The notes under the pieces were generated by a model. The model was not told the DNA's origin and did not search any database. It was given only the letters and a program-made list of their open reading frames with translations. A program made the translations under genes and the position numbers. This document shows, piece by piece, positions 4,788 through 60,962 of a stretch of 64,000 nt of DNA (its first letter is position 1; the number at the start of each line of letters is the position of its first letter). The stretch spans positions 62,001-126,000 of the IMG/VR virus record IMGVR_UViG_3300047445_000186; one strand, given 5' to 3'.

Positions 4788-5341
4788 CAGACGAACTGTT
4801 CACTGAACTGAACGACCGCACCTTGCGGTTCGACGGAATCTCGGTGCTCGACCCTGAAATGGTCGAGCACTTTTTGCTGCGTGGCATGAAGCCAAATCAA
4901 ATGCGTGTTCTCGAGCTCACACCAGAGCTCGAGACGTTCAACGAGAACGTTCCACCTGATGAACGGCTCTCGACAGAAATCTTCGAGGAACCTCAGTTCG
5001 AGGTTTCTTGGGAGTTGCCACCGAAGTACCTGGAGCTCGATGTCGAGCAGCACGTGCTGGCGGTGTTCGGTGAGCGTCTGCCTGAACTGGCGTATGACGC
5101 TACACAAACAGAGACGGCGATCACTCGTGTCGCCAGAGAGCTTGAGGAGTATGAGAGGCGAGGATTGACTGACCTGCTCAGGACAATCATTTACACGCTC
5201 GACAGATTCAAAGAGACAAACCAAGTGTTCGGTGTCGGGCGAGGCTCATCATGCGCTTCATTCGTGCTATTTTTGTTAGGACTGCACGTCGTAGATTCCA
5301 TCAAATACGACGTTCCACTGGAGGAATTTTTTCATGACTGA
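4784..5341 (+). CDS. DNA polymerase III alpha (DnaE)-like fragment, N-proximal palm region
   Basis: GVGRGSSCASFVLFLLGLHVVDSIKYDVPLEEFF matches the DnaE GxGRGSAAGSLVxYxLGITxVDP...FERF motif. Confidence 0.8.
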   Translation: MTDELFTELNDRTLRFDGISVLDPEMVEHFLLRGMKPNQMRVLELTPELETFNENVPPDERLSTEIFEEPQFEVSWELPPKYLELDVEQHVLAVFGERLPELAYDATQTETAITRVARELEEYERRGLTDLLRTIIYTLDRFKETNQVFGVGRGSSCASFVLFLLGLHVVDSIKYDVPLEEFFHD

Positions 5342-5615
5342 TCCAACTACCATCATCGAGTTCTATTGGTCGGCCGAGCCGAAGAACGGAAAGATGGCCT
5401 GGTGCGTGAACTGGAAGATGATGACCGAGAAGGGCGAAACGCTCTGCCACGGCGTCGGACACAAGAGTGAACGCGATGCTGCAATGAGTGTTCAGCGAAT
5501 CGCTGATGCGCTCACGCACAATCACCACCATCTGACCACGCATCATCTGGGGCCGAAGCCAACATCCCCACTTGCTGATTACCATGAAGACACAATCATG
5601 GGTATTCCAGTCTAG
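5334..5615 (+). CDS. hypothetical protein
   Basis: ATGA overlap with the upstream gene; ends TAG. Confidence 0.7.
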   Translation: MTDPTTIIEFYWSAEPKNGKMAWCVNWKMMTEKGETLCHGVGHKSERDAAMSVQRIADALTHNHHHLTTHHLGPKPTSPLADYHEDTIMGIPV

Positions 5616-5632
5616 CCAAGACCTGGAAACAG

Positions 5633-5661
5633 AAAAGGGACCTTACGGTCCCTTTATTTTT
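5633..5661. terminator. bidirectional terminator between convergent genes
   Basis: AAAAGGGAC-CTTACG-GTCCCTTT-ATTTTT. Confidence 0.75.
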
Positions 5662-5678
5662 GCTCAGATCCCGGAGGA

Positions 5679-5876
5679 TTAAGCAAGAGCTGCGGTAGCG
5701 ATGAACGCGGTGCCGTTGAACACCTTAATCATGTTCGCAGTCGTGTCAAACACAACAGTGCCTGGCTTAATTGCGTTCACTTCTTGCGTGCCAGTTGGGC
5801 CGAAAGCAGCGACGAGAGCGGTGATTTGAGTAGTCGTGTATGTGCGGAACGAGCCAGCAACGTTACGGAATGCCAT
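5679..5876 (-). CDS. small late protein (65 aa), possible virion decoration protein
   Basis: AGGAG SD and TAAATA on the minus strand; PGTVVFDTTANMIKVFNG resembles the G-x-x-x-FDTT-x-x-x-KxYNG motif of structural proteins. Confidence 0.7.
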   Translation of the reverse strand: MAFRNVAGSFRTYTTTQITALVAAFGPTGTQEVNAIKPGTVVFDTTANMIKVFNGTAFIATAALA

Positions 5877-6014
5877 GTGATTTTCTCCTAAGGGGGAAGG
5901 TAAGAGAAACTCCACACCATGCAGAGTTCCAGCAGCTATTTAGCCCGCTGGCCGGCCGGAGTAAATAAAGAACGCCATTATGGCGTGCCATACCCATCTA
6001 GGAGAAATTGCACC

Positions 6015-6245
6015 ATGTCGAACGCAATTCGCAGCGCCCGCGGCGTCTTTGTTGATTTTGAACTCTTGGCCATCAAGGCCCAACTCGCCGCAGTTCCGGT
6101 CCCAAAGCCAGTCTTGGATCGTCGCGTCGCTATCGAAGAACGCGAAGGGATCAAACCTCTCGCAACCCCTGCTGTCGATGAACTGCTTGCAGTTGCCGCT
6201 GCTGCAGCTGACGCATCCGCTCGCGTAGCTCCAAAGCGGAAGTAA
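6015..6245 (+). CDS. hypothetical late protein
   Basis: TAAATA at 5962, AGGAG SD, ATG 6015. Confidence 0.75.
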   Translation: MSNAIRSARGVFVDFELLAIKAQLAAVPVPKPVLDRRVAIEEREGIKPLATPAVDELLAVAAAAADASARVAPKRK

Positions 6246-6457
6246 TGTTCCATTCGACGAACAATCTGTTCTTCGGGAAGAAGGACGGGAACGTCCGGAT
6301 CCTGAAGCTCAGGACCGCTCCATCAGACTTTCCGAAGTTCGACACGAGTTTCCCTGCGCATGACGTGCTGTTAGACGTTACAATTGATGCTGGTACCTGG
6401 AGTTCGATCGTGTCATTGCAAGACGAGCGCCAGATCGATTATTTCTTTGTGGACTAA
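6245..6457 (+). CDS. hypothetical protein
   Basis: TAATG coupling. Confidence 0.7.
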   Translation: MFHSTNNLFFGKKDGNVRILKLRTAPSDFPKFDTSFPAHDVLLDVTIDAGTWSSIVSLQDERQIDYFFVD

Positions 6458-6801: not shown

Positions 6802-7986
6802 ATGCTGTTCGTCCTAATCACGTTCCTTGCTGCATTCCTGATCGAGGGTCTTGGGACCCTTGTGTCGGTTATCGGCCTGAGCACGTTGTTCGGCGCGAAT
6901 CCAATTATCATCGCGCTCGCGATCTCCCTCGACGTCGGCAAGCTCGTCGTTGTCTCGATGCTGTACAAGTACGGCAAAGAGATGGGGAAGGTCATGAAGA
7001 CGTACGCGTTCATCGCTGCAACGATCACAATGATCATCACCTCGGCTGGAGCCGCTGGTTATCTCTCTGGTGAATTCCAGAAGGCGATCATGGGTACTCA
7101 AGAGGGGAGCCTGAAAGTCTCTGTGCTGAAGGATCAGCAGAAGAAGTACGAAGATCGAAAGCGCCAGATCGATGATCAGATTGCTGCGTTGCCTGAGAAG
7201 ACGACGGTGAATCAGCGATTGAAGCTCATGAACGGCTTCAAGGCCGAGCAAGCTGAACTGCAGAACAAAATCTCTGATATTGACAAGCAGCTGCCTGAAC
7301 TCCAGATCCATCAGATCGGTGTTGAAGCGAAGGCTGGTCCAATTCTTTACATCGCGAAAGCGTTCGACATTCCCGTGGAGTCTGCAGTGAAGTACGTGAT
7401 TTTGATGATCATCTTTGTGTTCGACCCGTTGGCGGTCTATCTGATTCTGGCAGGGAACTTCTTGCTCGATCGGATGCGACGTCTGAAGGAGAAGGCTGGG
7501 ATCGTTCAAGAAGAACCGAAGGAAGCTGAAGACCCACGTCAGTTCCCAGCGAACTACGGCTTCGTTGCTCAAGAGGTCGCTGACGTCTTGCCTGAAGCGG
7601 TCACGAAGGAATACGACGCACAGCAAGCGCTCAGAGTCGTCGATCTGGCTGACTTCGAGCCGATCAATCAGGAACATAACCTGGCTGATGCGCTTCGCGA
7701 ATACGAACCACCGGTGGAGCCAGTCGTCGTTCAGGAGAAAGTACCTGAGCCAGCTCCACCGGTTCCTCAGCCAGTCGTGATTGAAGAGCCCATCATCGAG
7801 GCGGAGCCAGTGCAACCGGCGACACCTGATGAAGCCGAGCGTACGCTCGAGAAGCGAGAAGAGATCACGCTCGACGATCTGATTCCTGCTCGTTCTTCCT
7901 TGAACGACATCAATCTGAACGAACCCGGTTCGAACGTGGTATTCGATTCGACACCACAAGCGGTCACGAGTCGACACTACATCTGA
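6802..7986 (+). CDS. membrane protein with coiled coil and Pro/Glu-rich tail
   Basis: Three N-terminal TM helices, a coiled coil, a fourth TM (IIFVFDPLAV) and an acidic low-complexity C-terminus. Confidence 0.85.
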   Translation: MLFVLITFLAAFLIEGLGTLVSVIGLSTLFGANPIIIALAISLDVGKLVVVSMLYKYGKEMGKVMKTYAFIAATITMIITSAGAAGYLSGEFQKAIMGTQEGSLKVSVLKDQQKKYEDRKRQIDDQIAALPEKTTVNQRLKLMNGFKAEQAELQNKISDIDKQLPELQIHQIGVEAKAGPILYIAKAFDIPVESAVKYVILMIIFVFDPLAVYLILAGNFLLDRMRRLKEKAGIVQEEPKEAEDPRQFPANYGFVAQEVADVLPEAVTKEYDAQQALRVVDLADFEPINQEHNLADALREYEPPVEPVVVQEKVPEPAPPVPQPVVIEEPIIEAEPVQPATPDEAERTLEKREEITLDDLIPARSSLNDINLNEPGSNVVFDSTPQAVTSRHYI

Positions 7987-19155: not shown

Positions 19156-19329
19156 GTGAAGTTGTATGATTTTTCCGTGTACGCTAAAAAGCGTGAAGTT
19201 CAGCTCAGTGCTGCACGGGTCCTTGCGCTCAAGGAACGACTGCACGAACCTGGGATCGTGCTTGAACTCAAACGCGAGGTTCAAGACTGGCTAGTCCTCC
19301 ACCAAGAGGTCTCGCACAAGGCGTCCTAG
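19156..19329 (+). CDS. small late protein, MKLxD/E-type N-terminus (57 aa)
   Basis: Not in track; TAAATA 19120, AGGAG SD, GTG start, MKLYDFSVYAKKREVQL... Confidence 0.55.
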   Translation: MKLYDFSVYAKKREVQLSAARVLALKERLHEPGIVLELKREVQDWLVLHQEVSHKAS

Positions 19330-19371: not shown

Positions 19372-20175
19372 ATGAGTACCAAATACATCCGTGTCGCAAG
19401 CGACCTGCACCTTGAGGGGTTCATGGGTCGAAACATCGAGACCCTGCAAATCGACATGCTTCCAAAGCATGAGAACGACGCCGAGTCAATTCTTGTTCTC
19501 GCTGGCGACATCAGCTCCAGCCCCACGCAGCTCTGCCAGTTCCTGAAGGTAATCGAGAATCGATTCCGTCGCGTCGTGTACGTGCCAGGAAATCACGAGT
19601 ACTACAACAACGACTTCTCGACTTGGACTCCAGCAGTCCGTGACGCGCTCGAACAGAACTGTCCGAATACCTCGGCTGCTCTGAGCGAAGTGAAGATCGA
19701 AATCATCGACGGAATTCGGTTCATCTTCGGCACGCTTTGGGCCGATGGTGGCGACAGTCTGCACTCCCAAGCGAAGGTTGGCGCTGGTCTCTGGGACTTC
19801 AGCATCATCCGCGACAAGGGAATGCGGTTCACGGTTCAAGACATGCAGCAAGTCCACAAGGCGCAGAAGTCGCAGATCAAGCAAGCTCTTGCGATGCCGT
19901 TCGAAGGGAAGACGATCGTCGTGTCCCATCACATGCCTTCGTACCGTCTGTGCCATCCGCGTTTCGGTACCGAGATAAACGGTGGATTCGCTTCGAACTG
20001 TGACGCGATTTTGGCAGGTGACGATCACCCAGACATCTGGATTCACGGTCATACGCACGACACGATCGACACTGAGCTGTTCGAGACTCGAATTGTCTGC
20101 AATCCACGCGGATACCAACGCGAGGCGAACAAGTCCGAGTTCAACACGTTCGCGCCGAAGTTCATCGATGTCTAA
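19372..20175 (+). CDS. calcineurin-like metallophosphoesterase
   Basis: SDLH, LAGD, GNHEY, SHH, HGHTH motifs. Confidence 0.93.
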   Translation: MSTKYIRVASDLHLEGFMGRNIETLQIDMLPKHENDAESILVLAGDISSSPTQLCQFLKVIENRFRRVVYVPGNHEYYNNDFSTWTPAVRDALEQNCPNTSAALSEVKIEIIDGIRFIFGTLWADGGDSLHSQAKVGAGLWDFSIIRDKGMRFTVQDMQQVHKAQKSQIKQALAMPFEGKTIVVSHHMPSYRLCHPRFGTEINGGFASNCDAILAGDDHPDIWIHGHTHDTIDTELFETRIVCNPRGYQREANKSEFNTFAPKFIDV

Positions 20176-20623: not shown

Positions 20624-20675
20624 CGCCGTTACAATCGTTACAGATTGGACCTGCAGGATGTAGTACAATTCATCC

Positions 20676-26564: not shown

Positions 26565-27719
26565 ATGAATCTGACTCTGATTTGGTTCTTGGTCTTGCCG
26601 ATCATCGGCGGCGCCACGATCTGGCACTTCAATCGAAACACGAGCGCTGGGGTTTTCCTCGCGCCGATCGCTTTCGTCCCTGGCGCGATCCTGATCGGTC
26701 TCGTGTTCCTGATCTCGTACGGCTCGGCCGTGATCGACACAGAGATTTGGAGCGGCCAGGTCGTTTCGAAGACTCGAAAACACGACACGTACGAGGAATC
26801 GTACGAGTGCAATTGCAAGAACGTCTCGCGAACAGTGGGCTCTGGCAAGGATGCTCGGACCGTGACCGATCGCGTTTGCGACACGTGCTACCGAACGCAC
26901 TACACCGTGGACTGGGATTGCCAGACGACCGTTGGCTCGTTCCGGATCGACCGCAAGGACAGCACATGGCGCTCAGTGTACGACTCGGCAGATCCTGCGC
27001 GGTACACGTCAATCCAGAAGGGTGACCCTGCGGCGAAGACAGCGAAGTACACGAACTACGTGCAAGCCGTACCGAACTCTCTGTTTGCTGCAGTTGGAGA
27101 GACCACAAAGGCGCGATTCGCTGGAAAGCTCCCCGCGTATCCAGATCAGATCTACGACTTCTACCGAATCAATCGGTTCCTGTCCCCTGGGTTCTCGTTC
27201 CTCGACGCTGGAAAGTGGAACGAAGACATCTCGAACATCCTTCGTGATCTCGGCCCGGCAAAGCAGGTGAATGTGATCGTGGTTGTCGCGAAGACGGACG
27301 ATCGAGCGTACACCGCTGCACTGCGTGATCACTGGGAAGGCGCGAACAAGAACGACGTTGTGCTCGTGATTGGCTCCCTCGACGGCACGAAGATCGAGTT
27401 CGCCGAGGTCATGAGCTGGACGAAGAGCGAGATCTTCAAGATTGAGCTGCAAGACCGAGTGCAAGACATTGGCGTGATCGAGCGGAATCAGATCATGAGC
27501 GCCGTGCAACAGCAGATCGTGAAGAACTTCCAACGTCGCCATATGCGAGAGTTCGAGTACCTGAAGGGCGCGATTGATCCGCCGATGTGGCTCCTTGTCA
27601 CCCTGTTGATCACGCTCGTCGCTGGTTATGGTATTGCTGCAGCAGCCCTGACGGGTGCTCTCGATCGCTTCAGTGGTCGCAATCGCCGTGGAATTTACGG
27701 TCGCCGAGTTTTTCGTTAG
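26565..27719 (+). CDS. membrane protein with large periplasmic domain
   Basis: Two N-terminal TMs, CxC...CxxC, a C-terminal TM and a basic tail; ends TAG. Confidence 0.88.
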   Translation: MNLTLIWFLVLPIIGGATIWHFNRNTSAGVFLAPIAFVPGAILIGLVFLISYGSAVIDTEIWSGQVVSKTRKHDTYEESYECNCKNVSRTVGSGKDARTVTDRVCDTCYRTHYTVDWDCQTTVGSFRIDRKDSTWRSVYDSADPARYTSIQKGDPAAKTAKYTNYVQAVPNSLFAAVGETTKARFAGKLPAYPDQIYDFYRINRFLSPGFSFLDAGKWNEDISNILRDLGPAKQVNVIVVVAKTDDRAYTAALRDHWEGANKNDVVLVIGSLDGTKIEFAEVMSWTKSEIFKIELQDRVQDIGVIERNQIMSAVQQQIVKNFQRRHMREFEYLKGAIDPPMWLLVTLLITLVAGYGIAAAALTGALDRFSGRNRRGIYGRRVFR

Positions 27720-27725
27720 GACATC

Positions 27726-27983
27726 ATGTTTCGCTTTCTGTTCAATTGCTTTCGCAAGACGCCCGTGACCCCGCTCGCTGAAGACCAAGCGACCCTCGAA
27801 GGACTGGAGAAGATCGTGCACGACTTCGGTATGCGAGTTCACGAGTACATCACGCACCCTCTTGCCGACAAGGTCCAAGCTCGCAAACTCGAGGATGTGC
27901 TGCAGTACCACGAGGAACTTGTTCACTGCGCTCGCGCGAACATCTCAACCCGAAAACTCTGGAACACACTCGGCTACAACTGA
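27726..27983 (+). CDS. hypothetical protein
   Basis: AGGA SD. Confidence 0.7.
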   Translation: MFRFLFNCFRKTPVTPLAEDQATLEGLEKIVHDFGMRVHEYITHPLADKVQARKLEDVLQYHEELVHCARANISTRKLWNTLGYN

Positions 27984-28024
27984 GCTAGAATTCAACTCTC
28001 ATCAAACCACTGGAGAAGATCATC

Positions 28025-47714: not shown

Positions 47715-47764
47715 TCCCGAAGATCAAGGTTCTCGAACAGACGATCTTGATCTACAATAGAAGT

Positions 47765-48040
47765 ACTGCAGCAATGCAGTGATTGCCGTAATTCGGACTG
47801 ACTTGATGGATTTTGGACGGGGGTTCGACTCCCCCCACCTCCACCAAAAGAAGCTTGATCGCAGGATTCTTCTGATGGGGGTGCCATGGTTTCGACAAGG
47901 TTACTGAGATGACGTACGCGGCAGGAGAGACGACCGACCTAATCGGCGTAAATGAAGTAAATGCTAACTCTGATAGCTTCCGTCTCGTCGCCTAAACAAC
48001 GACCCCGGTGAGGTCAGCCGCCTTATAAAGAAACGGTTAG
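47765..48040 (+). ncRNA. ssrA: circularly permuted (two-piece) tmRNA
   Basis: Acceptor piece first: GGACGGGGGTTCGACTCCCCC-CACCTCC-A-CCA ending 47846. A 30-nt spacer follows, then the coding piece GGGGGTG-CCATGGTTTCGAC from 47877. The acceptor helix pairs fully with G3-U70. Resume context GTAAAT-GCT; tag ANSDSFRLVA* at 47963-47995. TACAAT at 47753. Outer ends are approximate. Confidence 0.9.
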
Positions 48041-48090
48041 AAAATAGAAAGTTGATCAAGCCTCGGCCGAAGTCCTTTTGATTTTTCGCT

Positions 48091-48120
48091 ACAAGGACCT
48101 TCGGGTCCTTGTTTGTTTTC
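48091..48120 (+). terminator. terminator after tmRNA
   Basis: ACAAGGACC-TTCG-GGTCCTTGT-TTGTTTT. Confidence 0.8.
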
Positions 48121-49086: not shown

Positions 49087-49146
49087 CCCGAACTATTTTC
49101 GGAAACGGATTGTACAGGTCTCCGGGTCTGTGTATAATTCACTCAT

Positions 49147-49221
49147 GCGCCTGTAGCTCAACGTCGGAGCAGTGGATTCTAAATCTGAAGGTCGTGGGGT
49201 AGGCACCCACCAGGCGCACCA
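49147..49221 (+). tRNA. amber-decoding tRNA (anticodon CUA) with non-canonical D and T loops
   Basis: GCGCCTG/CAGGCGC acceptor, GCTC/GAGC D stem, GTGGA-TTCTAAA-TCTGA anticodon arm (CTA at 49179-49181 by canonical spacing), AGGTC variable, GTGGG-GTAGGCA-CCCAC T arm, A73, CCA; own promoter TATAATTCAC at 49133. Confidence 0.78.
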
Positions 49222-49237
49222 AATTCTGGAGTAGGAA

Positions 49238-49348
49238 ATGAGTAGACGCAAACAGCAGGGCGATGCGCTTTTCTTGGCCATTCTTGCCGTGGTTGTCACC
49301 CTTGTGGTGATCGCCTGGATTGTGCAGACACAGTCCACCTCTTTCTAG
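49238..49348 (+). CDS. small single-TM protein (36 aa)
   Basis: Not in track; AGGA SD; MSRRKQQGDALFLAILAVVVTLVVIAWIVQTQSTSF, ends TAG. Confidence 0.55.
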   Translation: MSRRKQQGDALFLAILAVVVTLVVIAWIVQTQSTSF

Positions 49349-49382
49349 TCGTAAATAGTTTCACCAACCAAAGGAGTATTCC

Positions 49383-49727
49383 ATGAAGCTGTAGAACCTC
49401 AAGTCGTACCTTTACACGATTTCTCGCCGCGATCTCCCCCTCGCGCAACAGGCCGTTCAAGCTGCCCACGCTGGCATCGAGCACGCCTATCAATTTGGTC
49501 GCCCTGCCGATCACCATCCCTCGTACATTCACCTGACGATTCGCGACAAGCATCAGCTTGAGCAACTCCGTGCGCGTCTCCACAGCGCAGGCATCGGCAC
49601 GTCCGAATTTCACGAGCCTTACCAAGACTGGGGTCTCACGGCAATCGCTTGCTGTCTGACCGAAGACAATCGCAATCTGCTCAAGGGCCTTCAGCTCTGG
49701 CGCCTTCCAACTCAGGAGATGACATGA
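49383..49727 (+). CDS. Pth2-like peptidyl-tRNA hydrolase with in-frame TAG at codon 4
   Basis: Not in track. TAAATA 49352, AAGGAG SD, ATG AAG CTG TAG, then 110 open codons: NLKSYLYTISRRDLPLAQQAVQAAHAGIEH...EFHEPYQDWGLTAIACCLTEDNRNLLKGLQLW. This matches the Pth2 V-x-R-x-DL...AQ-x-x-HA and G-x-x-T-x-x-A...L-x-L patterns. No in-frame ATG/GTG/TTG lies between the TAG and the conserved N-terminal motif. Confidence 0.8.
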
Positions 49728-50332
49728 AAATCACGTACAACGAAAATCCAATGGCCGCAACGATCGAGCTCGATGAGCATGAGAAGCGCGAGCTCCGCAA
49801 TCGAATCGAGATCAAGGAGCTGAAGGAGCTCTTGTACGACACGCACTTCCATCTGGTCGACGAGTACGACGGGAAGTACTTCGATCTGGCGAAGGCCCGA
49901 GAGAATGTGGAGCCTTCGTACTATTACGCGGACGACACCCCGACCTGCGGTCTCGAGAAGCGAGTCGAAGAACTCTACCAGTACGCGCTCAGTGAACAGA
50001 CGAGCTCCCACGCCGGTGATTGCACGTGCTTCGCCTGCTCCTGCACGAAGTGCTGGTTCGAAGGGATGCTCGGCATTGATACGATCAAGGGACTTGGGAA
50101 GCACGAAGGTCACAAGATCTACGCAGCTTTCAGCAGGGAAGGTATGACGGTCGATCGCTTGATCGCTGAGTGGGAAGCTGCTCCTCCTATCGTCGCAACC
50201 AAGGACTGGCATGAGGGTCACACTGACCGTTGGAATGCTGAACGAGCTAAGGCGCTCGCCTGGTTGAAGGAGTACCGGACGTTGGTAGGAACCACGACGG
50301 TCACCCCGGTTGGTGTCGATCGGACTCTGTGA
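49724..50332 (+). CDS. hypothetical protein with Cys cluster
   Basis: AGGAG SD, ATGA overlap with the Pth-like gene; HAGDCTCFACSCTKC. Confidence 0.85.
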   Translation: MKITYNENPMAATIELDEHEKRELRNRIEIKELKELLYDTHFHLVDEYDGKYFDLAKARENVEPSYYYADDTPTCGLEKRVEELYQYALSEQTSSHAGDCTCFACSCTKCWFEGMLGIDTIKGLGKHEGHKIYAAFSREGMTVDRLIAEWEAAPPIVATKDWHEGHTDRWNAERAKALAWLKEYRTLVGTTTVTPVGVDRTL

Positions 50333-50334
50333 AA

Positions 50335-50358
50335 CGCTATCTGTCACCTAATGCCTCT
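50335..50358 (-). repeat. dispersed 24-bp intergenic motif, copy 3 (inverted)
   Basis: CGCTATCTGTCACCTAATGCCTCT is the exact reverse complement of 401-424. Confidence 0.9.
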
Positions 50359-50388
50359 TAATTCACGCCTCACCCTAAAGGACTTCAC

Positions 50389-50997
50389 ATGACGTAGGTT
50401 TACCCCACTTCCTTCGACGAGCTCAAAGCAGCGATGCAATCAGGCACGCAAACGAGAGGGATCAGCTTCTGGGAGCATGGTTCACTTGTCTCACGCCGGT
50501 TCTGCGATCTCATGAACCCGAACCCGCAGATGATCTGGCGACTGCCTGCTTGGTTCACTGAGCACGCGGATTGGATTCGCGAGACGCTGATGCCTCACTT
50601 CGAGAACATCGCGATCTACCACCAATGGCACGATTGCGGTAAGCCGTACTGCAAGACGATCGACGAAGACGGCAAGGTCCATTATCCAGATCACGCTGAA
50701 ACGTCTGCAAAGATCTGGAATTCGCTCACTCAAGGACAAACTGACCCTTGGGCGAAGGACAATCGTTGGATTGGTTGCCTGATCCGCGATGACATGCTTT
50801 GTCATCAACTCCGTCCAGCCGATGCAGAGGCTTTCGCCTTGAACCCGAACGCTGTCACGCTTCTCACGACCGCATTGTGCGAGCTGCATGCGAACGCCTC
50901 CATGTTCGGAGGTCTCGAATCCGACTCTTTCAAGATCAAGTACAAGCGTCTTGATAAGTGCGGTGCTACTATTCTCAATAAACTCACGAAGGAATAA
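50389..50997 (+). CDS. HD-domain phosphohydrolase with in-frame TAG at codon 3
   Basis: AAGGA SD 6 nt before ATG ACG TAG GTT TAC CCC..., in frame with track ORF 50434..50997; EHG...WHDCGKPYC...DGKVHYPDHAETSAKIW HD motifs. ATG 50434 lacks an obvious SD. Confidence 0.8.
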
Positions 50998-55018: not shown

Positions 55019-55094
55019 ACCCGGTTAGCTCAGTTGGTAGAGCGGCGTCATGACATGGCGTAGGTCGTTGGTTCAAACCCAACACCGGGTACCA
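55019..55094 (+). tRNA. tRNA-Val(GAC)
   Basis: ACCCGGT/ACCGGGT acceptor; loop ATGACAT; TTCAAAC T loop; CCA. Confidence 0.85.
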
Positions 55095-55303
55095 TTGGAA
55101 ATCGCTCTTGTGACATCTTCTAACATGGAAAGATTCGCGGTGAGTATCGTAAAAATGCTGGTTTCGAGATCCAGCTGTCATTCGAGTGATTCCCAATGGT
55201 AAGAAAATCCTTGTTGTGAGGGTGGAAAGCGGAACACTGGCCATTTCGGTAAATCCTTTTGGTTGCACGCAGTTTTGAGTACATTCAACAGTCAATGAGG
55301 TAT

Positions 55304-55392
55304 GGGCCCGCTGTCCTTGGAGAGATAAGCTCGCTGTAAACGAGTGGCACGCAAATAAGTCTGAACTGGTTCGATTCCAGTCGGTCCCACCA
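55304..55392 (+). tRNA. tRNA-Tyr(GTA)
   Basis: GCTCG-CTGTAAA-CGAGT; long variable arm; CCA. Confidence 0.8.
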
Positions 55393-55400
55393 AATAACTT

Positions 55401-55483
55401 TCGCTTCAACCGTTGTGGTAACGGCCCGACTTTGAATCGGTGGTCACGAAAACTGATGAGGTTCGATTCCTCGTAGCGATCCA
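55401..55483 (+). tRNA. atypical tRNA-Gln(TTG)
   Basis: CCCGA-CTTTGAA-TCGGT; extended variable region; TTCGATT T loop; CCA. Confidence 0.65.
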
Positions 55484-55499
55484 AATTGAAGAACACCTT

Positions 55500-55586
55500 G
55501 CCCAGGTGGCGGAATTGGTAGACGCGCAGCGTTGAGGTCGCTGTGTCCGAAAGGACGTGGAGGTTCGAGTCCTCTCCTGGGCACCA
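55500..55586 (+). tRNA. tRNA-Leu(GAG)
   Basis: CAGCG-TTGAGGT-CGCTG; canonical long variable arm; CCA. Confidence 0.95.
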
Positions 55587-55681
55587 TGAAAATAAGAACA
55601 AAAACAAACACGGAACGATGTTGTCCTCGCAACATCGGGAATGTGAGGTCGCAGAAGCGATCTAAAACCGAGGCGTACTAA

Positions 55682-55774
55682 CCGTACTGATGAGCTGGTG
55701 AAACTCCAGCGAAACGCACTGAGAAAAGTTCATCGAGGTAAGAACTCTGAACGTAGTACCAGTAGCGTATACGG
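55682..55774 (+). ncRNA. type I hammerhead ribozyme
   Basis: Stem I CCGTA/TACGG; core CTGATGA; stem II GCTGG/CCAGC; GAAA; stem III ACGC/GCGT; GUA cleavage triplet with the cut after 55769. Confidence 0.85.
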
Positions 55775-55889
55775 GACAATGTGGTGAAGTTAAATGCAGT
55801 GAGTGCACTTACTGTATGATGCACCTTTGGTCAGCTTACATGCTGGTCAAGTTCAAGATCGGACCTTGATCGTTGCACCCGACCAATTT

Positions 55890-56340: not shown

Positions 56341-56414
56341 TTGGTAGTAGCATGTGTGGGATATGCAGCCCTTTGGTGGGAAGATCACAGGTTCAAATCC
56401 TGTCTACTGATCCA
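56341..56414 (+). tRNA. degenerate tRNA-like gene (Pro TGG-like anticodon region)
   Basis: Acceptor, D and T arms and CCA present; anticodon stem poorly paired. Confidence 0.45.
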
Positions 56415-59628: not shown

Positions 59629-59703
59629 GTTTACGTAGCTCAGTGGAAAGAGCGCCATCCATCGCGTGGTGGAGACGCAGGTTCGAATCCTGTCGTAGTT
59701 CCG
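59629..59703 (+). tRNA. degenerate tRNA (anticodon position ATC), no CCA
   Basis: Canonical D and T arms; loop CCATCGC; weak acceptor. Confidence 0.45.
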
Positions 59704-60879: not shown

Positions 60880-60962
60880 GGCCTCGTGGATAGTGCAAAT
60901 CGGTACAGCTACCGGGTTTAGAACCCGGACCATTGTGAGTTCGAGTCTCACCGAGGCTACCA
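60880..60962 (+). tRNA. tRNA-Leu(TAG) with short variable loop
   Basis: CCGGG-TTTAGAA-CCCGG; 6-nt variable loop; enlarged D loop; CCA. Confidence 0.8.

Follow-up and report, generated by a model that had tools for sequence, protein, structure and literature searches.

Predicted tRNA-end enzyme genes of jumbo phages carry in-frame stop codons at their starts, probably decoded by a phage suppressor tRNA

The window analyzed here is a 64-kb stretch of a jumbo-phage genome (positions 62,001 to 126,000 of the IMG/VR record IMGVR_UViG_3300047445_000186), which has a GC content of 55% and carries almost all of its genes on the + strand. It holds a transfer RNA (tRNA) gene with the anticodon CUA directly 5' of three genes on the same strand, referred to below as A, C, and B, of which A and B are each interrupted by TAG a few codons after the start. 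An earlier reading of this DNA, made from its letters alone without database searches (the sequence-only reading), had proposed that A and B are enzymes of tRNA metabolism whose synthesis depends on decoding of these stops. Judged from the comparison of related phages, A and B are real genes, each with a programmed in-frame stop a few codons after its start, and the stops are very probably selected features that are decoded by the cognate suppressor tRNA of the phage.

The suppressor-type tRNA and the two interrupted genes

The amber suppressor-type tRNA (49147-49221, + strand) has an encoded CCA end and matches the Rfam tRNA model RF00005 with 43.4 bits over 49147-49218 (gathering score 29; E 5e-7). 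Its minimum-free-energy fold is a cloverleaf, and its anticodon loop, UUCUAAA, has 7 nt with U33, a purine at position 37, and the anticodon CUA complementary to the stop. The elbow is non-canonical, with a T-loop that reads GUAGGCA rather than TTCGAAT and a D-loop (AACGUCG) that lacks G18 and G19; the anticodon stem is weak, and ARAGORN made no call for this tRNA in the window. A T-arm of the GGTTCGAnTCC type was found in 23 of the 24 tRNAs of relatives that were aligned, and the acceptor stem and the genomic position of the window tRNA resemble those of the canonical CUA tRNAs of relatives. Directly 5' of the gene lies a sigma-70-like promoter candidate (TGTACA-16-TATAAT, 49111-49138, + strand) with 10 of 12 matches; since such sites do not exceed the chance number in this region, it is the position of the candidate that supports it. 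The main tRNA array is located 5.8 kb downstream. The stand-alone CUA tRNA 5.8 kb from the array, described in the sequence-only reading, is borne out by the Rfam match and the fold, and the promoter-like site is a candidate for the promoter assigned to it there. The idea that a CUA tRNA of initiator type starts translation at the UAG itself was considered and rejected, because the spacing of the Shine-Dalgarno (SD) sequences fits the upstream ATG, the 1-72 ends of the tRNAs are paired, and their anticodon stems have no GGG/CCC.

Gene A begins with the SD sequence AAGGAG (49371-49376), which is followed by ATG AAG CTG from 49383 and by TAG at codon 4 (49392-49394). We refer to such a segment, here 49371-49394 on the + strand, as the gate of the gene. 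The body of the gene (49395-49727, + strand) consists of 110 codons and ends in TGA, and for 108 of the 110 codons after the TAG there is no ATG, GTG, or TTG. By coding scores from a codon model for which the window itself served as training data, gene A was the only start-less leader in the window with a clearly positive score. Moreover, protein conservation in family A begins right after the stop (YLYTISRRD...). As conservation starts there and no start codon is available downstream, gene A appears to be translated from directly after the stop.

The AlphaFold model of the gene A protein (predicted local distance difference test score, pLDDT, 86.6) reveals a Pth2 fold. The top 15 Foldseek matches in the PDB are all Pth2-fold or related entries, and those at probability 1.0, with template modeling (TM) scores of 0.6-0.7 (1q7s, 1wn2, 3erj, 2zv3, and 1xty), are human Bit1 and the archaeal Pth2 proteins of Pyrococcus, Archaeoglobus, Methanocaldococcus, and Sulfolobus. 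At the level of sequence, the Pfam family PTH2 (PF01981) scored 14.3 bits in the window gene A (cut-off 23) and 25.3 bits in its homolog from phage XacN1, and it was the top Pfam family, as a weak match, in 13 of 17 relatives. Single-sequence Pfam searches of A and B returned nothing at E 0.01 or better, and a profile of gene A gave chance matches only against PDB sequences. All 144 close homologs of A in a large protein database are named hypothetical. The Pth2-like identity assigned to gene A in the sequence-only reading is therefore upheld by the structure model and the Foldseek matches. From work on the Sulfolobus enzyme, we take the catalytic residues of Pth2 to be the Lys of the GKGK loop and the Asp of the DAG motif. 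When the A domain of XacN1 was aligned to the Pth2 protein MJ0051, a Gln from the invariant QQ of family A stood opposite the Lys, and a Glu from the invariant 'EP' stood opposite the Asp. Because both presumed catalytic residues are replaced in this way, we describe the protein by its fold, as Pth2-fold, rather than as a peptidyl-tRNA hydrolase.

The gate of gene B (50377-50397, + strand) comprises the SD sequence AAAGGA (50377-50382), ATG ACG from 50389, and TAG at codon 3 (50395-50397), and is followed by a body of 199 codons (50398-50997, + strand). The next in-frame ATG is found 12 codons on, both in the window and in many relatives, and conserved residues lie between the stop and this first Met. 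The two SD-led genes broken by TAG at codon 4 and codon 3 are thus present in the sequence as first described. Family B contains the invariant residues H27, H78-D79, H99, D132, and H136 (18 sequences), which include the metal-binding pattern of HD domains. A profile of gene B matched PDB entries 3wfo-3wfs in the C-terminal HD/body region of class II tRNA nucleotidyltransferase (residues 261-384, E 3e-5), and the AlphaFold model (pLDDT 94.4) had a sole strong match, 3wfr, which is described as a 'tRNA processing enzyme complex' (probability 1.0, TM 0.58). In addition, gene B matches phrog_14850 at 2e-49 and, weakly, the NCBIfam family tRNA_CCA_actino. The Pfam HD family (PF01966) gave no match to the window gene B, 25.3 bits in the homolog at locus L004 (cut-off 22), and weak matches in 4 of 18 relatives. 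These results agree with the sequence-only reading, which had seen in gene B an HD hydrolase related to CCA-adding enzymes, and we predict that it is an HD phosphohydrolase of the kind attached to such enzymes and acts on the 3' end of tRNA.

A and B are fused into one open reading frame (ORF) in XacN1, RAS14, L004, and pT24, and the fusions keep the early TAG. These fusions argue for joint action of the two proteins at the 3' ends of tRNAs. In most loci examined, A and B lie among or beside phage tRNA genes, and a phage tRNA nucleotidyltransferase is encoded near it in ME3 and S-CBWM1. Between A and B, the window carries gene C (49724-50332, + strand), which has an ordinary start and encodes a conserved cysteine-rich protein of 202 amino acids. 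Homologs of gene C are present in L009, L010, L012, L013, L015, L018, L020, and L025, and RsoM2USA_92 of phage RsoM2USA holds the same position. No match to gene C was found in Pfam, PHROG, NCBIfam, or PADLOC, and the PADLOC and NCBIfam searches of A, B, and C together gave nothing useful. In RsoM2USA, gene C (L029:6354-6914, RsoM2USA_92) runs in frame into gene B (L029:6915-7478), and the terminator of C is the TAG gate of B; suppression in this phage could also yield a C-B fusion protein.

Within the 64-kb window, A and B are the only open frames that combine an SD-led ATG, an early stop, and a start-less coding leader. The other early-TAG candidates in the window (at 6360, 20658, 27989, 40408, and 896) were rejected, as they have ordinary SD-ATG starts downstream. 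Reading TAG as a sense codon gained no further gene in the window and gave 47,253 coding bases, compared with 47,787 under the standard code. The whole 344-kb genome of RsoM2USA was also scanned; it has one CUA tRNA, and A and B are its only convincing amber-interrupted genes, one further TAG candidate having a leader score of just 0.9. TAG serves as the terminator of 5 of 89 genes in a rough gene set of the window and of 35 of 483 coding-like frames in RsoM2USA. The claim of the sequence-only reading that the genome is not recoded throughout therefore stands, and its figure of at least eight TAG-ended ORFs is roughly right, given 5 in the rough set and 10 when coding-like frames on both strands are counted. 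Two of the five TAG-terminated window genes have in-frame neighbors with which suppression would extend or fuse them. The gene at 26565-27719 is followed two codons on by a gene in the same frame (27726-27983), and the gene at 19156-19329 has an in-frame gene downstream (19372-20175) with a second TAG in between. These arrangements may be due to chance.

The early stop in related phages

Homologs were collected by tblastn against a phage collection, with matches to A in 37 records and to B in 29, and by a search of IMG/VR with the part of each protein that follows the stop, which gave 24 loci for A and 4 for B. An in-frame stop is present 1-4 codons after the start (ATG, once GTG) in 21 of the 24 IMG/VR loci of gene A, and an SD sequence precedes the start in most of them. 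Gene A keeps the stop in about 28 lineages and gene B in about 21, mostly at codons 2-5 and most commonly at codon 3-4, and each gated gene has one stop only. The short ORFs that it closes in gene A encode ML, MHKL, MQS, MKH, MK, MKA, MQ, MRS, MCS, MKK, MNA, MSL, V, and MKS in the IMG/VR loci, with MAQ, MT, and MTH in addition among cultured and GenBank phages. Gene B has MT, MSN, MM, ML, MK, and MTM before its stop; in L011 this stop stands at codon 12, and in L022 at codon 14. Thus, the codons around the gating stop vary freely and the stop itself is kept. One or two CUA tRNAs were found in most fetched loci with enough flank. The conservation of an early stop with a linked CUA tRNA, which the sequence-only reading had put forward as the way to check its proposal, is therefore seen in very divergent phages for both genes, with the cognate tRNA in most of the fetched loci. 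This is the reverse of the outcome that the sequence-only reading had named as refuting, namely homologs that have sense codons or downstream starts and lack a linked CUA tRNA.

The context 3' of the gating stop is also distinctive. The base that follows is a purine in 43 of 43 gates, compared with 41 of 75 ordinary TAG terminators, and a 3' purine is known from classical work in E. coli to favor nonsense suppression. The codon after the gating stop is ATT, GTT, ATC, GTC, or ATA in 29 of the 43; the other codons at this position are AAC (in gene A of the window), ACA, ACC, ACT, ACG, AAT, GGC, and GTA.

One lineage, L018, uses the opal stop. Its gene A begins with ATG GAA TCG TGA and its gene B with ATG ACA TGG TCG TGA, and both of its suppressor tRNAs have the anticodon UCA. 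In the gene A tree, L018 branches from within the TAG lineages, which makes TGA the derived state. The L018 gates of A (5980-5999) and B (7625-7648) have 12 bases in common, TCG TGA GTC ACT, which suggests either copying between A and B or a context requirement for UGA suppression.

The bodies of the suppressor tRNAs are closest to phage tRNA-Arg(UCU), the best match for 12 of 29, which points weakly to an origin from this tRNA and does not settle how the suppressors are charged. As separate observations, phage tRNA-Arg(UCU) often adjoins suppressor tRNAs (L007, L025, and RsoM2USA record positions 55153-55821), UCA is one substitution away from UCU, and the CUA loop CUCUAAA differs from the Arg loop CUUCUAA by a shift of one base.

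Among cultured and GenBank phages, both genes are gated in RsoM2USA (A with ML-stop, unannotated; B with MKS-stop). The fused genes of XacN1 and RAS14, in the order B-A, and of the Tenacibaculum phage pT24, in the order A-B, all have the gate MK-stop, which lacks an SD sequence in pT24; an annotated tRNA-Sup lies 2.7 kb upstream in this phage. Some phages gate one of the two genes only. ME3 (A with MT-stop, CUA tRNA 450 nt upstream) and Arash (A with ML-stop, CUA tRNA present) have a plain start in B, and L050 has a plain start in A together with ML-stop in B and a CUA tRNA. In GAP32, A has MAQ-stop, B has a plain start and a TAG at codon 46, and an annotated Sup-tRNA is located 2.8 kb downstream. 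The 595-kb genome LR756511 has MTH-stop in A. Ungated A genes with plain starts are found in K64-1 and S-CBWM1, and neither has a CUA tRNA in the 16-kb locus; no match to B was obtained for K64-1 in the phage search.

Two apparent departures from this pattern did not hold. Locus L022 was first set down as an exception because it has a copy of A with a plain start, and this was rejected, as it also carries a 5' fragment of A with the gate MKA-stop and a gated B. The fragment (5308-5970) covers 41 residues and then runs into unrelated sequence, and the second, complete copy with a plain ATG lies at 6004-6309; the arrangement looks like an insertion or partial duplication. Similarly, a sense codon for Gln at the position of the stop in database homologs was rejected, since the DNA has TAG and the source pipelines had translated it by code 15. 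Many database homologs of A begin with 'M..Q..', and TAG is translated as Gln in, for example, P0005, P0006, P0019, and those of loci L046-L049, so that the stop is hidden at the protein level. In L012 (5820-6291), gene A is without its first 13 residues, and an upstream ORF is in frame up to a junction TAG (...HKTLQ-stop-CIPLAQQA), which could form a readthrough fusion.

The gate also explains errors of annotation. Many GenBank records lack gene A or have it in truncated form: it is absent from the RsoM2USA annotation and truncated in GAP32 and Arash. Gene B of GAP32 is annotated as three ORFs, the CUA tRNA of Arash is labeled tRNA-Phe, and the fusion genes of XacN1 (ORF364) and pT24 are annotated from a later ATG.

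Decoding of the early stop and the alternatives

The comparative data exclude sequencing error, pseudogenes, and genome-wide recoding as the source of the early stops. The simplest reading to fit all the data is programmed nonsense suppression by a cognate tRNA of the phage, as a gate on one or two genes. Reinitiation explains neither the match of TGA with UCA in L018, nor the phages that have neither the gate nor the tRNA, nor the post-stop codons AAC, ACA, and ACC. The proposal that the two enzymes are closed by their stops and opened by the suppressor tRNA gains most from L018, where stop and anticodon have changed together. We infer the readthrough itself, and likewise the residue inserted. 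A ribosome would start at the SD-led ATG and meet UAG at codon 3-4, where either release factor 1 (RF1) would release a peptide of 2-3 residues or the phage CUA tRNA would insert an amino acid and allow the full enzyme to be made. In this scheme, the tRNA and the stop would act as a private key and lock, making the two acceptor-end enzymes conditional on, and proportional to, mature charged suppressor tRNA. The suppressor tRNA may be co-transcribed with the genes A, C, and B, which it directly precedes on the same strand, and no convincing terminator was seen between them in the window. Since the level of a stable tRNA would build up with time, the gate would serve as a delay or dosage coupler and would tie the tRNA-maintenance enzymes to the tRNA program of the phage. 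We put forward delay or dosage coupling as the purpose of the gate tentatively, rating it somewhat below an even chance. The sequence-only reading further proposed a gate that responds to RF1 or to the condition of the translation machinery, which we can only infer.

Several points weigh against decoding by a dedicated suppressor tRNA. The window tRNA is the most degenerate of its family, with 43 bits compared with 49-75 in relatives, atypical loops, and no detection by ARAGORN; it may be poorly working, or another suppressor may lie outside the window. The suppressor tRNA is 12 kb away from the gated genes in RsoM2USA, and the two CUA tRNAs of XacN1 are placed in the terminal repeats according to its paper (PMC5852040). 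No suppressor tRNA was found in the fetched flank of the gated loci L003, L004, RAS14, and LR756511, the last two of which were covered over ±5 kb. The opal suppressor of L018 would read ordinary TGA terminators too, and no stop is more common than TGA in the window and the related IMG/VR loci. The chemistry of gene A, judged from its replaced residues, may differ from peptidyl-tRNA hydrolysis. Finally, the logic of the scheme is incomplete, because a repair enzyme that needs an intact tRNA would drop exactly when tRNAs are damaged.

A related possibility, which we consider doubtful, is that the tRNA and its codon form a pair with a purely regulatory job, in which the suppressor serves as a canary: it would signal how healthy or abundant the tRNA pool of the phage is and set the level of 3'-end maintenance. 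The suppressor would undergo the full life cycle of a tRNA, including processing, charging, delivery, and exposure to host tRNA-attacking enzymes, and the pair would have persisted through a joint switch from UAG/CUA to UGA/UCA.

It is unlikely that the arrangement is instead a self-limiting circuit, in which the main job of the suppressor lies elsewhere, for example on host messages, and A and/or B deacylate or trim the suppressor or all charged tRNAs, so that negative feedback keeps the readthrough of ordinary stops safe. For both proteins, the acceptor end of tRNA is the predicted site of action, and the gating of only one of the two genes in some phages would fit such feedback. In addition, with TAG ending 5-7% of phage genes, unlimited suppression would be costly, and the adjoining transfer-messenger RNA (tmRNA; see below) would clear ribosomes that read through to the ends of messages. 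However, no other target of the suppressor was found in RsoM2USA in our scan or in XacN1 by its authors, which leaves the circuit with no known output.

The strong SD sequences and the stops at codons 2-5 in most lineages also bring to mind the minigenes of lambda bar, which are stand-alone and toxic in cells deficient in Pth. In that case, an extension put forward in the sequence-only reading, the short peptidyl-tRNAs that drop off from the ORFs of 2-4 codons would be substrate for the downstream Pth2-like enzyme, and the load would shape expression. The Pth2 fold of that enzyme fits this idea, and the gates of A and B have in common with lambda bar a strong SD sequence, an ORF of 2-3 codons, and a setting of peptidyl-tRNA hydrolysis. 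However, the mini-ORF here shares its frame with a conserved enzyme and has a cognate suppressor as its partner, and its short length is not universal: the stop of gene B is at codon 12 in L011, codon 14 in L022, and codon 46 in GAP32. Moreover, the codon before the stop is not conserved, pT24 has no SD sequence, and the match of TGA with UCA in L018 is left unexplained. We therefore regard drop-off as highly unlikely.

There is only a slim chance that the mini-ORF is a leader after which ribosomes reinitiate, either at the codon that follows the stop, in many cases AUU, AUC, AUA, or GUU, or, for gene B, at the downstream AUG, with the suppressor tRNA unrelated. The bias of the post-stop codon (29 of 43) and the in-frame ATG 12 codons on in many B genes would be expected from reinitiation, whereas the remaining post-stop codons, including the AAC of the window gene A, and the lack of a canonical start for 108 codons in A would not. 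The residues before the first Met of B are conserved, the type of stop tracks the anticodon in L018, and the ungated phages are without the tRNA, all of which contradict it.

Reassignment of TAG by code 15, over the genome or in blocks, as in crAss-like and Lak phages, is very improbable. A suppressor tRNA is present and public pipelines already translate these TAGs as Gln, but no further gene is gained in the window or in RsoM2USA when TAG is read as sense, TAG remains a terminator in both, and each gated gene has one stop only. Pseudogenes or assembly errors, for which an in-frame stop would be the usual mark of a dead gene, have next to no chance of being the explanation, given intact conserved frames at 33-83% protein identity in about 30 independently assembled or cultured phages and two metagenome contigs with the same TAG-containing starts. 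These two IMG/VR contigs, of 235 and 332 kb, come under different metagenome ids. Their A and B proteins are identical, the sequence 5' of both genes is the same, including the TAGs, and both contain a full-length match to the window tRNA; the agreement of two separate contigs argues that sequencing error is not the cause.

Known systems and the surroundings of the locus

Readthrough of a stop for a needed protein is known from A1 of phage Q-beta, where a host near-cognate tRNA reads a leaky UGA that closes a gene. The gates of A and B are similar to it in that a stop would be decoded as sense to make a needed protein; unlike Q-beta, the phage here supplies a cognate suppressor, and the stop stands at the very start of the gene, which would make the outcome all-or-none.

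Suppressor tRNAs have been described as timers of late and lysis genes in crAss-like, Lak, and other gut phages (Borges et al., bioRxiv 10.1101/2021.08.26.457843; Peters et al., PMC9523058). Comparing the two systems, both have a suppressor tRNA in a phage of a standard-code host, decoding that would gate genes with in-frame stops, and versions for TAG and TGA. However, one or two genes per genome are affected here, with a single stop at codons 2-5 and TAG otherwise used as a terminator, and the gated genes are predicted tRNA-end enzymes rather than structural or lysis genes. The coding density is unchanged as well, so that methods of code detection miss the gate.

The authors of the XacN1 genome read through 18 annotated amber terminators and found no targets for its CUA tRNAs (PMC5852040), and the RsoM2USA paper reports a suppressor tRNA and names no target (PMC8504454). 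These are the same tRNAs as those considered here. Both phages carry homologs of A and B, and the targets that we propose are starts of 2-4 codons that had not been annotated. A 2021 paper (PMC7824862) notes PTH2 in jumbo phages in a tRNA-repair setting and, as judged from a term search of its text, draws no link to suppressor tRNAs or in-frame stops; this PTH2 belongs to the same protein family as gene A and to the same functional neighborhood. Full-text literature searching found no published description of A and B genes gated by a suppressor tRNA.

If the stops are decoded as proposed, the arrangement would name the missing targets for the suppressor tRNAs of standard-code jumbo phages such as XacN1 and RsoM2USA. 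It would be a minimal form of stop-codon recoding, with one tRNA, one or two genes, and one stop each at the start, and may be how larger code changes begin. It would also be a natural example of the switch made of an orthogonal tRNA and an amber codon in synthetic biology. By its link to tRNA 3'-end enzymes, the switch would be part of the contest between phage tRNAs and the host defenses that attack tRNAs. Several of the phages can already be grown on laboratory hosts.

Upstream of the suppressor tRNA, the window encodes a permuted (two-piece) tmRNA of betaproteobacterial type (47733-48058, + strand; Rfam beta_tmRNA 130.9 bits, tmRNA_permuted 125 bits). Its tag peptide is ANSDSFRLVA according to ARAGORN, and a terminator-like hairpin lies 3' of it at 48091-48112. 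A DNA-level search of the phage collection found no close relative of the window, and its sole match was 49 bases of this tmRNA. In at least 10 relatives (L010-L012, L014, L016-L018, L022, L025, and L026), a tmRNA is located 0.5-3 kb upstream of the suppressor tRNA. As this position is kept, a cluster of tmRNA, suppressor tRNA, and the genes A, C, and B recurs, to which the tmRNA is tied by association only. Between the tRNA and gene A lies a small ORF for a hydrophobic peptide of 36 amino acids (49238-49348, + strand), which has weak, sub-threshold Pfam matches only and whose membership in the module is uncertain.

The main tRNA array of the window contains 24 genes between 55 and 61 kb, starting at 55019. 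It includes some odd members according to ARAGORN (56341-56414, 59629-59702, and 60880-60962), which are a call with a two-base anticodon ('tRNA-???'), a tRNA-Asp(AUC), and a tRNA-Gly(ACC). Elsewhere in the window, the motif GTTACA, at times doubled as CGTTACA, recurs in intergenic regions 5' of genes (900-980, 6350-6385, 20625-20670, and 27985-27995). A TAGAAT or TACAAT box follows GTTACA near 950 and 20665, and a separate TAGAAT is present at 27986; these sites may be phage-specific promoters.

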